From Octopus sinensis (lineage: Eukaryota), in NCBI RefSeq assembly GCF_006345805.1, contig NC_042998.1, forward strand, positions 8,742,001 through 8,806,000: a stretch of DNA of 64,000 nt, written 5' to 3'. Below, piece after piece: positions 39,893 to 60,334 of this stretch. Position 1 is the stretch's first letter, and every line of letters begins with the position of its first letter. The notes below the pieces were generated by a model. The model was not told the DNA's origin. It was given only the letters and a program-made list of their open reading frames with translations, and did no database searches. The position numbers and the translations under genes are program-made.

Positions 39893-39943
39893 CTTCAATT
39901 GAAGCAGGAATGTTTTCATTCGGCTGTGATTCTCTCTCTCTTC
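39893..39943 (-). CDS. Putative host micro-exon 5 (51 nt, phase 1-1): (G)RERESQPNENIPASIE(G)
   Basis: Acceptor CTGTCTTATCGATTTTCAG and donor AAG|GTAGGAGTCATTT. Length is divisible by 3, and four paralogous exons share the flanks. Confidence 0.7.
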
Positions 39944-40604
39944 CTGAAAATCGATAAGACAGAGACAGTCATTTAACAAAATTAATATATGAGTAACATT
40001 TAATTGATATATATATATATATATACAAACCTTTCTACCGGAAGCACAAGGGCTCAAAATTTGGGGGAAGGGTTACGTGCGTAACTGGTACTTAATTTAT
40101 CGGCCCCGAAAAGATGAAAGGAAAAGTTGACTTAGGCGGAATTTGGACTCATCGATATATATAATAACGGTTACAATACAATGAATATTTTTTTACTATA
40201 AATTATATTCAATTTGAACCAAGTTTAAGAAACTTAATGCGAATTTCAAAATTGATAAATTTCCATTTGTTTAACGCACGGGGACGTTACAGAATTAGAG
40301 TCAAGGCTCGTTTCAACTCCACTCAACATTTTGTTGCGACAAGCACATTTACTGCTTGACCATTGATATTTTTGTATTTAATTCAAAGAATTTTTCTTGA
40401 ACTGTAACCAACATCAAAATTGCCAAAAGTGTTACACAAAGGACAATAAGCAATACCTTATTAAATGGCAAGATATCAAAAGACCCTTTTTCTAAAACCT
40501 TCCTTCTAATTATAAGGTTTCCAAATGAGCAGACACCATGGAATTTGCATAGACCTTGATAGTCTTATATAAAAGTTTTCATGTAAAAACATTATATTAT
40601 TATT

Positions 40605-41400
40605 ATTATTATTGTTGTTGTTGTTTTTTGTCATTGCATAGCTTCTAAAGCTGGAGATGTACTACGGTGCTAGCTGTCCACTACCAGTGAACTAAGGTAA
40701 CACCCCTAATTTTTCGAGCACCATCCGGAGTATTCGAGTGGTTCCAAGCAGTACTGTTTTCTGCAAGTGATTTACACTTATTGCAGCCCCTATTTGTTCC
40801 ATGTACTTCTCAAGATTTATACTCCCTGTTCGCAGGGCTCTAACAATTATTTTTACTACTAGCACCTTGTTCATCGACCACAACTGCTTAACCTCCCAAG
40901 CTAACCTGTCATATCTACTGATTTTTCTTTCTTCTTTGTTGTCAGCTGGGCTTGCTATATCTATGATCCAGCATCATTTGCTTTCTTTCTCAATTAAAAC
41001 TATGTCTGGCTACCTACTCTCTGTGTCATGGACGCACTGAATCATAAAATCCCATAGGTTCTTTGCATTATCATTTTCGATAATGCGTTCGGGTTTATGT
41101 TCGTACCACTTTTTTGCTCTGTCAAGCACATGTTTCTTGCAAAGTGTCCAGCGGTCATTCCTTTGTAGAATCTCTTCTGATCTACACTGAATATCCTTTT
41201 CCGTTGGTGGACCTTCAGTCTTTGGTTGTATCTTACGATCTTTGCTTTCTCTGCAACGTAACGCCGTTTCAGTTCCTCCATTACCAGTTTCAGGCCACTT
41301 CTCTAAATACCATACCTCCTGTTCAGTGCCATGTATTTCTCTTCGCTAATAAACTCCCCCTTCTCTTTCCCGACCAAACCAGAAATGTCCTTCTAGAGCA
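40605..41400 (-). mobile_element. R4/Dong-like (restriction-like endonuclease) LINE, internally deleted
   Basis: PDIVLIEKE..IIDIA..KISRYDRL..HLQKTVLLGTTRILR (RLE) is fused to the N-terminal EELKRRY..DQKRFYK segment. The tail is (AAC/AAT)n. Confidence 0.75.
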
Positions 41401-41514
41401 TACCTAACCCCGCCTGTATTCTTCTTTTCCACCATAAATAATTTCTTTTGTCAATGTCATTATATTTCTTTTTCTTGATATCACCACACACATTTTTAGA
41501 TACAACAATATTTT

Positions 41515-41762
41515 CATCATCATCATCATCATCATCATCATCACCACCACCATCACCACCATCACCACCACCACCACTACCACCATCACCATCATCATCA
41601 TCATCATCATCATCATCATCATCATCATCATCATCATCATCATCATCATTATTATTATTATTATCATTATTATAATTATTATTATTATCATCATTACTGG
41701 TTTATTATTATTATTATCATTATTATTATTATTATTATTATTATTATTATTATTATTATTAT
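41515..41762. repeat. Compound trinucleotide microsatellite (CAT)n/(CAC)n/(TAT)n
   Basis: Direct reading. Confidence 0.95.
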
Positions 41763-57096: not shown

Positions 57097-57334
57097 ACTT
57101 ATATATATATATACATACACGCACACACACACACACAGACACACACACACACACATATATATATATGTACACACGATGGAGTGGACAGACGAACGAAGGG
57201 CACTCAACCAATATATTGGGAGTTACATGAATGGATCAAAAGAGTTTGATTCAAATTCGTTGGTAATCTTGAAATTCAAGCGTGATCCTAGTCGTCAACC
57301 ATTTTGAATTTGAATGACAGAAGTTGATTGTTAT

Positions 57335-59640
57335 TAACGATTAAGAGTATGAAGACAGGGAAAGCCCCCGGTCCATCAGGAATTACTGCAGAGATGCTCA
57401 AAATATCTGGCAGTGTCGGCTATAGCCTAGTCACACGTAAAGTTAACCAGGTGATACACGAAGGAGTCATACCCAATGACTGGTGTAGCAGTATAATAGT
57501 CAACTGCTACAAAGGTAAAGGTGATGCTTTAGATACAAATAATTACAGTGGTATCAAGCTGTTGGATCAGGTAATGAAGGTTACGGAGACGGCCATAGCC
57601 CAACTAATTAGGGAGAGAGTCAGATTGGATGAGATGCAGTTTGGTTTCGTGTCAGGGAAAAACACCACTGATGCTATATTCCTGGTAAGACAGCTGCAGG
57701 AAAAATACCATGCCAAAGATAAGCCCCTGTACCGGGCTTTCGTTGACATGGAGGAAGCCTTTGACAGGGTCCCCCGATCCATTATCTGGTGATCATTGAG
57801 AAAACTAGGGATAGCGAATGGTTAGTGAGAGGCGTGCAAGCCATGTACAGGGACGCTGTCACTAAGGTGAGGGTTGGCAACGAGTACACTGAAGAATTCA
57901 GGGTAGAGGTAGGGTTCCACCAGGGTTCAGTCCTCAGCCCCCTCCTATTTATCATAGTCCTCCAGCAATAACGGAGGAATTCAAGACAGGATGCCCCTGG
58001 GACTTCCTTTATGCTGATGACCCTGTTCTAATTGCTGAGTCACTATCAGAACTAGAGGAAAAGTTTCAGGTGTGGAAACAAGGATTAGAATCGAAGGGCC
58101 TTAGAGTCAACCTAGCTAAGACCAAAGTCCTAATAAGTAGGAAGGCAGGCAAACCACAAATCTCTTCAGGTAGATGGCCCTGCTCGATCTGTAGTAGAGG
58201 CGTAGGTAGAAACTCTATAAGATGTACCCAGTGTAAGCTATGGACACATAAGTGGTGCAGTAATATCAAAGGAAGGCTAACGGGGAAGATAGCTTTTGTA
58301 TGTGGCAGATGCTCGGGAGCAATAAGCACTGAAAATGTGCAGAGAACAACTGCCACATTCCAGGGAGGTAAACTAGAAGTAGTTGATAGCTTCCGTTACC
58401 TAGGTGACCAGGTCAGTAGCGGGGGAGGGTGTGCTGAAAGTGTAGCTGCTAGAATAAAAATAGCTTGGGCAAAGTTCAGTGAGCTCTTACCCCTGCTGGT
58501 GACAAAGGGCCTCTCGCTCAGAGTAAAAGGTAGACTGTATGACGCTTGTGTACGAACAGCCATGCTACATGGCAGTGAAACATGGGCTGTGATTGCTGAG
58601 GACATGCATAAGCTCGCAAGGAATGAAGCCAGTATGATCCGATGGATGTGTAATGTCAGTGTGCATACTCGACAGAGTGTGAGTACCATGAGAGAAATGT
58701 TGGACCTAAGAAGCATCAGATGTGGTGTGCAAGAGAGACGACTACGCTGGTATGATCATGTGGCGAGAATGGATGAGGATAGATGTGTGAAAAAGTGCCA
58801 CACCCTAGCGGTTGAGTGAACCTGTGGAAGAAGTAGACCCTGGAAGACCTGGGATGAAGTGGTGAAGCACGACCTTCGAAATTTAGACCTCACTAAAGAA
58901 ATGACTAGTGACCGAGACTTTTGGAAATATGCTGTTCGTGAGAAGACCCGGCAAGCCAAATGAGACCATAATCTCGTGGCCTATGCCAGGAGCGTAACCA
59001 GCCCACTTATTCGTAACTTTTCCTTCTTTGGACACCAAAACTCTGCTTGCGAATACCTGTTGAGGCAAGTGAAATTAAAATCAAAATCAAATTCGATGAC
59101 TGGCGTCCGTGCTAGCGGGGTGCAAAGAGCACCATACGAGTGTGATCATTGACAGAGCGGCTAACCGGCTTCCCTGCAAGTGGCACTTAAAAGGCACCAT
59201 TCGAATGTGATCGTTACCAGCGTCGCCTTACTGGTACTCGAGTCCCGTGCTAGTAGAGTATTAAGAGCACCATCCGAGCGTGATCGTTGCCAGAGTGGCT
59301 ATCTGGCCTCCATGCCGGTGGCACGTAAAAGACACCATTTGAGTATGATCGTTACCAGCATCGCCTTACTGGCCCCTGTGTCGGTGGCATGTGTAAAAGA
59401 TTCGAGCGAGGTCGTTGCCAGTACCGCCTGACTGGTCCCGTGCCGGTGGCACATAAAAGCACCCACTACACGCATCGGAGTGGTTGGTGTTAGGAAAGGC
59501 ATCCAGCTGTAGAAACTCTGCCACATCAAGATTGAAGCCTGGTGCAGCCATCTGGTTCGCCAGCCCTTAGTCAAATCTTCCAACCCATGCTAGCATGGAA
59601 AGCGGGCGTTAAACGATAATGATTATGATGATGATGATGT
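57335..59640 (+). mobile_element. 5'-truncated RTE LINE with frameshifts, 3' UTR and tail
   Basis: RT pieces 57328-57792, 57789-57971 and 58070-58819. Tail (GAT)n at about 59625-59640. Confidence 0.9.
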
Positions 59641-60283
59641 ACGTTGGGCTGAGATTCGTAGAGGAAGGTCACACGATATCGTGGTTTGATATTGGTGTAT
59701 GGGTAAAAGTTAGTTGGAAAATGTCACATGAAGAACAGGAAATTGACCACGTGGAGTGCAGGAAATAGACGATGTGATGATTAGAAATCGGTTTGGATAT
59801 TGGGGTGTAAGTAGAAGGGGGTGGGCGTGAATATGCAAGTATATAGTTCTATATGTGGATGTGTAGACAGTCTCATATAACTTTGCGTGTATCTGTATAG
59901 CGATGCGAATGAGCGTATCTATACATGGGAGCTCACGCACAAGTTTGCACACGCACACAAACACACACGCTTGGACGAACATGCAGGCGCACGTAAACAC
60001 ACATACACACATATAGGTAAGCATGCACACAAGCATGCGAATGCATATGTACATATGAATGAATACTCATGTGTGTATATGGGCGTATGCGCGTGTATGT
60101 GTGTTTGTGTGTGTGCTCGCGTTTCTCCAAGCAAGTGTGTGTATATTTGTGTGTGTGTGTGTGTGTGTGTATGTGTGTGTGTGTGTGTATGTGTGTGTGT
60201 GAGTGTCTGTGTGTATTTGTGTGTAAGTCTGTGGGCGCCCATGTACATGAGCGCACATAAAGTTTGCTAAAAGTGACACCTAC

Positions 60284-60334
60284 CTTTATTTTGCATCATA
60301 TTGTATATACTCAGTTTTGGTGTTTCCCCAGTCT
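60284..60334 (-). CDS. Putative host micro-exon 1 (51 nt, phase 1-1): (E)TGETPKLSIYNMMQNK(x)
   Basis: Acceptor CTGTCTTATTTTTTTCTCAG and donor AAG|GTAGGTGTCACTTT. The other two frames contain stops. Confidence 0.72.

Follow-up and report, generated by a model that had tools for sequence, protein, structure and literature searches.

The window analysed here is a 64,000-nucleotide stretch of the Octopus sinensis genome (NCBI RefSeq contig NC_042998.1; scaffold C2:8742001-8806000), in which five micro-exons were located on the minus strand and assigned to the predicted gene LOC115232395. In our reading, which we hold at a probability of roughly 0.68, duplicated and skippable short exons of this kind encode the tail of an octopus membrane receptor with immunoglobulin (Ig)-type domains. 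Positions inside the window are counted from its first letter; positions past its end are given as extended coordinates x, for which x + 8,742,000 is the position on C2. The letters A, B, C and D, with or without primes, denote the tail cassettes, and D1, D2 and D3 denote the Ig-type domains. The five exons in the window are the following.

60284-60334, minus strand: micro-exon A (the second A of the array), 51 nt, phase 1-1; encodes ETGETPKLSIYNMMQNK with YNMM (YxxM / YxxPhi), which is residues 285-301 of XP_029658112.1
53129-53176, minus strand: micro-exon B (the second B), 48 nt, phase 1-1; encodes ENGQVLKHGYVPVNYE, with two tyrosines (YVPV, NYE)
50583-50636, minus strand: micro-exon C, 54 nt, phase 1-1; encodes GPSIILDEEADSRPVSNE, with an acidic cluster
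46266-46316, minus strand: micro-exon D, first copy, 51 nt, phase 1-1; encodes GRERESQPNENIPASIE
39893-39943, minus strand: micro-exon D, second copy, 51 nt; exon and near flanks identical to the first D copy

These segments had been proposed in an earlier note made from the letters alone, and the coordinates and lengths given there were found to be exact. Each is preceded by the same acceptor flank, consisting of CTGTCTTAT and then 10-11 nt ending in AG, and has the same donor flank (exonic AAG, then intronic GTAGGN(A/G)TCA(C/T)TT), as had been described. A composite pattern of both flanks matched five times in the window, against 0.00 matches expected from 100 dinucleotide shuffles, and 21 times in the 2.72-Gb genome, against 0 for a reversed control. 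The sole frame open in all five segments is offset 2, with intron phase 1 on both sides, and the segments are symmetric. The spliced peptide of the earlier note was correct letter for letter, being identical to residues 285-369 of XP_029658112.1, and a word-indexed protein search with it, in line with the suggestion that a host gene be sought, led to the RefSeq models of O. sinensis LOC115232395. Because the joined translation is part of a protein already in RefSeq, the exons are neither hidden nor, at sequence level, undescribed, and the gene, whose identity was said in the earlier note to be beyond determination from the window, can be identified. The exon status of the segments is supported by the identical module boundaries in two independent annotations, that of RefSeq for O. 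sinensis and that of O. vulgaris (orthologous modules). Aligned to the O. sinensis model, which has 17 coding exons, the five segments correspond to exons 11-15, and two more copies of the flank motif were found outside the window, one B (C2:8806967-8807014) and one A (C2:8814875-8814925).

LOC115232395 carries the RefSeq name "uncharacterized protein", and its isoform X1, XP_029658112.1, is 383 aa long. The gene lies on the minus strand and spans ~95 kb, from ~26.6k in the window to extended ~121.4k. When the model was mapped to the genome, the other exons were placed as follows.

extended ~121.4k, minus strand: signal-peptide exon 1
extended ~107.2k, minus strand: signal-peptide exon 2
extended 104.3-104.55k, minus strand: D1 exon
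extended 94.7k, minus strand: D2a exon
extended 87.1k, minus strand: D2b exon
extended 82.0k, minus strand: D3a exon
extended 78.3k, minus strand: D3b exon
extended 75890-76009, minus strand: transmembrane exon, encoding TVIIVFVVLFSLLLILVCFLFWYIM, then KTCKRRR
extended 72875-72925 (outside the window), minus strand: first A cassette
extended 64967-65014 (outside the window), minus strand: first B cassette
26830-26873, minus strand: coding part of the terminal exon, with a phase-1 acceptor; encodes GPFHGTCSMIIAIH and the stop

An AATAAA is located in the terminal-exon region at 26654-26659. All junctions of the mapped model are GT-AG and their phases fit: phase-1 introns flank each cassette as well as D1, the D2 and D3 exon pairs and the transmembrane exon, and D2 and D3 are each split by a phase-0 intron. 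The introns of the array measure about 2.5 kb to 13 kb, and seven of the 17 coding exons are cassettes, which together account for roughly one quarter of the protein. The last base of every exon preceding a cassette is G, so that only the downstream exon determines the junction codon. In-frame skipping of any subset, as had been claimed, is therefore possible, and it leaves the other residues unchanged. A search of the literature returned no paper naming the locus, or micro-exons in octopus.

The product is predicted by modelling to be a type I membrane protein with a signal peptide, domains of Ig fold, a single transmembrane helix and a tail on the cytoplasmic side. The signal peptide is followed by D1, which is a V-like Ig domain, then by D2, also an Ig domain, by a degenerate D3, by the helix and by a tail of ~130 residues, the whole receptor-like protein being roughly 450 residues long. 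In an AlphaFold model built on a 15-sequence family alignment, D1 and D2 were beta-sandwiches with predicted local distance difference test (pLDDT) scores mostly of 80-97, and the best Foldseek matches in the PDB were antibody light chains, butyrophilins, Necl-4 (nectin-like 4) and Neph1, with E = 1e-8 to 1e-9. A second AlphaFold model, that of the window's own product, placed the transmembrane helix at residues 217-253, where the hydrophobic stretch of the transmembrane exon runs into its basic residues, and gave tail residues 253-367 a pLDDT of 24-31, secondary structure being absent. Since a signal peptide (whose exons are present in C2), Ig domains, a helix and basic stop-transfer residues follow one another, the tail would be cytoplasmic, and the cassettes are thus predicted to encode a disordered cytoplasmic tail. 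Pfam searches with the proteins gave only sub-threshold noise, so there was no Ig match, and an Rfam scan of the window gave no match.

Within the array, the homology between cassettes lies mainly in the introns around them. The conserved flanks are located at the following positions.

60335-60404, minus strand: acceptor-side intron flank of A, ~70 nt, reading ATTAAATGTTA...TTAAATG.CTGTC.CTGTCTTAT...AG
53177-53246, 50637-50706, 46317-46386 and 39944-40013, minus strand: the same acceptor-side flank, by alignment, before B, C, D and D, respectively
60204-60283, minus strand: donor-side intron flank of A, ~80 nt, beginning GTAGGNRTCAYTT, with the GTAGG donor
53049-53128, 50503-50582, 46186-46265 and 39813-39892, minus strand: the same donor-side flank, by alignment, after B, C, D and D, respectively

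Between module types, the upstream 70 nt show 73-80% identity against ~61% in shuffles, and the downstream 80 nt show 55-72% against 52-55%, with B, C and D at 69-72% to each other and A weaker at 55-59%. The exon bodies, at 50-63% against 52-56% in shuffles, are at background, and beyond the 70/80-nt flanks identity also falls to the baseline. This difference between flank and body indicates that splicing context, phase and a length class of 48-54 nt have been retained since the old duplications, and that the peptide has not. All seven tail cassettes have GTAGG donors, and GTAAG was found in five of the seven donors examined on other exons. Module alignment, an nhmmer search and flank identity all support the claim that an exon-plus-flank module was tandemly amplified, in that neighbouring exons share not only homology, which extends to their flanks, but also length class and phase. 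The nhmmer search recovered 21 full-length modules in three loci (E from 1e-46 to 1e-55), with no further divergent or degenerate module in these loci; in all 21 the frame is open and the two splice sites are preserved, and each of the three changes in exon length amounts to 3 nt. A solitary degenerate module, L039, is located on scaffold C15 (~55,167,100-55,167,300, minus strand), with an acceptor flank 81% identical, a 51-nt body containing an in-frame TAA, and a GTTGCA donor instead of GTAGG. Long (CA)n and (TA)n microsatellites abut the conserved flanks of A and B (60189-60283 and 53250-53330, minus-strand intron) and explain most of the divergence that the flanks seem to show from copy to copy. 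An RNA bridge was also considered for module D, where upstream TTAAATGAC and downstream GTCATTTAA looked complementary, and was rejected using RNAduplex: 16 pairs of donor flank and acceptor flank bound no better than dinucleotide shuffles (z -2.1 to +1.4), so that no signal of the docking/selector kind is present.

Two duplications carry cassettes of the array, and their segments are given below.

45190-47893: copy 1 of a tandem repeat carrying D, with its partner at 38816-41512
38816-41512: copy 2 of the tandem repeat carrying D, with 97.5% identity to 45190-47893
50720-61360: proximal copy of an A-B segmental duplication (~12.6 kb), with its partner from 62557 to extended 73957 and an identity of 97-99%

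With 30 mismatches between them, at 97.5% identity, the two D repeats indicate that neither D module is an assembly copy of the other. The cassette order at C2 is A-B-A-B-C-D-D followed by the terminal exon. A paralogue on scaffold C4 has the order A'-B-C'-D-D'x4-D'', the unplaced contig C9182 has A-B-C-B'-A, and the full-length model of O. vulgaris has A'-B-C'-B-C-D-D-D''. The O. vulgaris homologues are located on two chromosomes with sizes matching C2 and C4, from which it can be inferred that the two-locus arrangement is older than the split between the species. C2 and C4 are 93-98% identical, introns included, and carry different insertions. Among recent paralogues, exon substitutions number ~16 non-synonymous to 2 synonymous (including a hand count for module C), and exon and flank divergence, pooled within module types, are similar between recent copies. 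A and A' differ at 6 of 51 nt, which alters four residues (SIYN to FTHD, with the tyrosine lost), and the adjoining upstream flank is identical over 150 nt. No accelerated evolution of the exons is claimed for recent paralogues, as the two divergences are similar and the ~16:2 ratio is indistinguishable from neutral.

An extra 231-nt exon is present in the C4 and O. vulgaris models (C4:39,497,934-39,498,164) between the transmembrane exon and cassette A. Its 77 residues are mostly hydrophobic. The exon is part of an insertion specific to C4, and neither C2 nor C9182 has it; it could represent either inserted sequence that was exonised or an error of annotation.

Three isoforms of the window's gene are predicted in RefSeq: X1 contains all cassettes, X2 lacks the first B and has an A-A junction, and X3 lacks one D. 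In the C9182 model the transmembrane exon is joined directly to C. Divisibility by three and conserved flanking intron sequence are known to mark alternative as against constitutive exons (PMC1635713, PMC1201369). The symmetric exons and conserved flanks described here fit regulated splicing, without proving regulation, and a regulated, combinatorial use of the cassettes is plausible on the predicted models. A regular-expression scan of the window's gene found YNMM twice (fitting YxxM and YxxPhi) and YVPV twice. YxxM binds the SH2 domains of PI3K p85, and YxxPhi binds AP-2. The same scan found no canonical immunoreceptor tyrosine-based inhibitory or activation motif (ITIM or ITAM) in this gene. 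With the definitions of PMC9546547, in which an ITIM is [ILVS]xYxx[IVL], fitting sequences (SEYVLV and SEYVPV) were found only in the B' cassette of C9182 and O. vulgaris. A CD28-like YxN motif for Grb2 was dropped as a candidate, because the asparagine is at +1 and not +2 and the scan finds no YxN.

The receptor belongs to a family that was seen only in octopods. HMMER searches against 1.84 billion representative proteins returned 16 proteins, and every match with a source looked up came from an octopod (O. sinensis, O. vulgaris, O. bimaculoides or Argonauta hians); no homologue outside octopods, and none among named vertebrate receptors including PECAM-1, was found in that set. All members of the family are annotated as uncharacterised. 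Genome-wide there are at least 90 matches to D1-like (V-like Ig) exons, many of them on scaffold C27 (~16.1-16.6 Mb), which by sequence comparison indicates a large, clustered, octopod-specific gene family without a Pfam model. Micro-exon tails throughout this family were considered and rejected, as the repetitive tail of member P0021 is encoded by a single exon, and the tail array is for the same reason specific to the branch described here. In three O. bimaculoides relatives (P0009, P0012 and P0018), two to five consecutive transmembrane-like segments follow the Ig domains; these may be tandemly duplicated transmembrane exons strung together, or alternative exons merged by the gene predictor.

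By analogy, the closest known counterpart of the array is the tail of PECAM-1 (CD31) and not the micro-exon genes (MEGs) of schistosomes, to which the earlier note had likened it. PECAM-1 is likewise a type I membrane protein of the Ig superfamily with a tail built from a series of short exons; these, eight in number, are alternatively spliced, and loss of exon 14 abolishes SHP-2 binding (PMC5664058), so that removing one exon removes one tyrosine docking site, and the tail is intrinsically disordered (PMC5314882). The octopus gene shares this architecture, with an Ig-fold ectodomain behind a signal peptide, as judged from AlphaFold, Foldseek and the signal-peptide exons, and a single transmembrane helix followed by seven cassettes and the terminal exon. 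It differs from PECAM-1 in that HMMER and Pfam reveal no sequence homology, that the tail exons of PECAM-1 are not described as tandem module copies with shared intron flanks, and that the window's gene has no canonical ITIM and only predicted alternative splicing.

A parallel case is that of the invertebrate Alr proteins of Hydractinia, a lineage-specific, clustered and expanded single-pass family with fast-evolving, tyrosine-motif tails that are alternatively spliced (PMC9546547). Their Ig domains, like those of the octopus protein, have diverged so far that sequence profiles miss them, and it took structure prediction to recognise them. However, Alr Ig domains are each encoded by a single exon, whereas D2 and D3 of the octopus gene are split, and Alr tails are not reported as duplicated micro-exon arrays. 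In arrays of the Dscam type, tandemly duplicated homologous exons are used one per transcript under the guidance of competing RNA pairings. Neighbouring octopus exons are similarly homologous, of one length class and phase, and derived by tandem duplication, but the RefSeq models use the cassettes in series and not singly, and with flank pairing at chance in the RNAduplex comparison a mutually exclusive, Dscam-like mechanism is not supported.

We propose that the cassettes arose when an exon was tandemly duplicated along with its flanking intron sequence, ~70 nt upstream and 80 nt downstream, with selection holding the splice flanks, phase and length class and the peptide left free to change. 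Segmental duplication or unequal crossing-over would then keep altering cassette number and order between paralogues and species. The cassettes may act as short linear motif units, A supplying YxxM/YxxPhi, B supplying YVxV and a second tyrosine, and C and D being acidic or serine-rich, and their copy number and in-frame skipping would set the number of docking or sorting sites on the tail, much as alternative splicing of the eight short tail exons does in PECAM-1. A more ambitious form of this proposal, which we regard as doubtful, holds that the 70/80-nt flanks are a shared splicing-control element producing regulated, tissue- or state-specific cassette combinations. In that case the tail would amount to an adjustable set of motifs for docking or sorting (YxxM, YVxV or ITIM-like, acidic), carried by expanded octopod-specific Ig-fold receptors with an immune or self/non-self role, and its copy number would evolve rapidly under selection.

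Several observations weigh against a receptor tail built from skippable exons, and some of them would also suit a neutral origin, in which unequal crossing-over lets the cassette number of an indifferent, disordered linker drift, the window's copy being perhaps a decaying duplicate and thus a pseudogene. In this assembly, a 1-bp deletion breaks the full-length frame of the window's gene: in the D1 exon of the C2 copy one A is missing (ATGAAGAGG to ATG-AGAGG; extended ~104,500, C2:~8,846,500, minus strand), and since the frame is shifted the RefSeq model begins with an internal Met. In the C4 copy, one G is missing from exon D3b (TCTGGAAAT to TCT-GAAAT; C4:~39,501,200), and the copy is for this reason annotated as two genes. 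D3 is predicted only at low confidence, having lost its conserved cysteines and folding poorly in the model. The use and skipping of exons rest on predicted models, and X3 could stem from reads that are ambiguous between two identical D exons. Without a canonical ITIM or ITAM in the window's gene, its short tyrosine motifs could be due to chance. Because the ~16:2 ratio is not below neutral (dN/dS is not below 1) and exon and flank divergence are alike within module types, the sequences give no sign of constraint on the amino acids, and the degenerate module on C15 is also what drift would leave behind. On the other hand, drift does not readily explain why all 21 modules keep their frame, length class and both splice sites, why all three exon indels are of 3 nt, or why the flanks are well above background between old module types when the sequence further out is not. 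The full-length O. vulgaris model is intact, and, single bases apart, the affected exons are 100% identical between C2 and C4. Each frameshift is the loss of one base from a two-base run, which fits a long-read indel error in the assembly at least as well as decay, and for neither deletion is pseudogenisation the likelier cause. The occurrence of two different single-base deletions in two paralogous genes may thus reflect assembly indels or twin pseudogenes. The neutral account as a whole is considered unlikely.

If the assembly can lose single bases in coding exons, the repeated cassettes themselves (A-B twice, D twice, and those of C9182) might be uncollapsed haplotypes or mis-joins, and C9182 is indeed a 29.8-kb unplaced contig with a mosaic cassette order. 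This is the least probable of the explanations considered, as the copies of the repeats are 1-3% apart, their numerous mismatches and indels being scattered over kilobases, C2 and C4 differ by 2-7% and have different insertions, and the O. vulgaris models, which come from an independent assembly and lie on two chromosomes, also repeat B, C and D. Nearly as improbable is a combinatorial system like that of the schistosome MEGs, in which skipping of symmetric micro-exons would yield many variants of an exposed or secreted product. MEGs have symmetric exons of 3-81 bp among long introns, vary by skipping, and encode secreted proteins made mostly of micro-exons (PMC10526429). The octopus exons resemble these in being symmetric, 48-54 nt long and set between long introns filled with transposable elements. 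Every subset of them can be skipped in frame, and RefSeq X2, X3 and the C9182 model are predicted to skip some; the exon bodies have diverged faster than the flanks, and amino-acid changes are clustered, as in A and A'. The resemblance fails on the defining point, however, since the octopus micro-exons encode only a tail that follows the transmembrane helix of an Ig-fold type I protein and is predicted to be intracellular, and not the body of a small secreted protein, and they are seven of 17 coding exons. There are only four cassette types, with duplicates within the gene identical, so that skipping would alter dosage and not the sequence repertoire, and the diversification system that had been suggested has little diversity to offer. 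The two lineages are unrelated, MEGs have no relation in sequence to the octopus gene, and HMMER found no homology outside octopods. Of the earlier interpretation, then, what stands is that the exons are real, symmetric and tandemly amplified; that they are hidden or MEG-like does not.

The earlier note also placed the exons among transposable elements, and retrotransposon open reading frames (ORFs) are indeed present inside the introns, as determined from Pfam RVT_1 matches and translation. These, and further ORFs with reverse-transcriptase (RT) sequence downstream of the gene, are listed here.

48971-50437, minus strand: RT ORF, a fragment of a non-long-terminal-repeat (non-LTR) retrotransposon, in the C-D intron (Pfam RVT_1 E = 4.5e-30)
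57893-58819, plus strand: RT/PHD ORF fragment in the A-B intron (Pfam RVT_1 2.2e-05, PHD 2.1e-04)
31013-33181, plus strand, opposite to the gene: 722-aa ORF in the last intron, with a YVDD RT motif and a C-terminal GIY-YIG-like sequence (VYQIKC...YIGET...R..EH), recognised by eye
11153-13372, 18699-20774 and 24168-24818, minus strand, downstream of the gene: long RT ORFs and an endonuclease-RT fragment (RVT_1 E = 6.5e-32 and 5.8e-28), one with a PHD finger

The 722-aa ORF at 31013-33181 gave no Pfam match; judged from its sequence, its motifs are as in Penelope-like retroelements. The three downstream regions are copies of non-LTR retrotransposons, and several are 77-89% identical to the copies in the A-B intron at 57.3-59.0k.

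What had been put forward as a possible new diversification system is thus probably an instance of an ordinary principle, that of a receptor tail made from duplicated and skippable short exons. The object in which it is found is little studied, being a family of Ig-fold membrane proteins that is restricted to octopods and missed by sequence profiles, one branch of which has a tail array with a cassette number that differs between paralogues and sister species. If the cassettes are regulated signalling units, this branch would provide a compact natural case, in a cephalopod, of receptor valency tuned by exon copy number and splicing.

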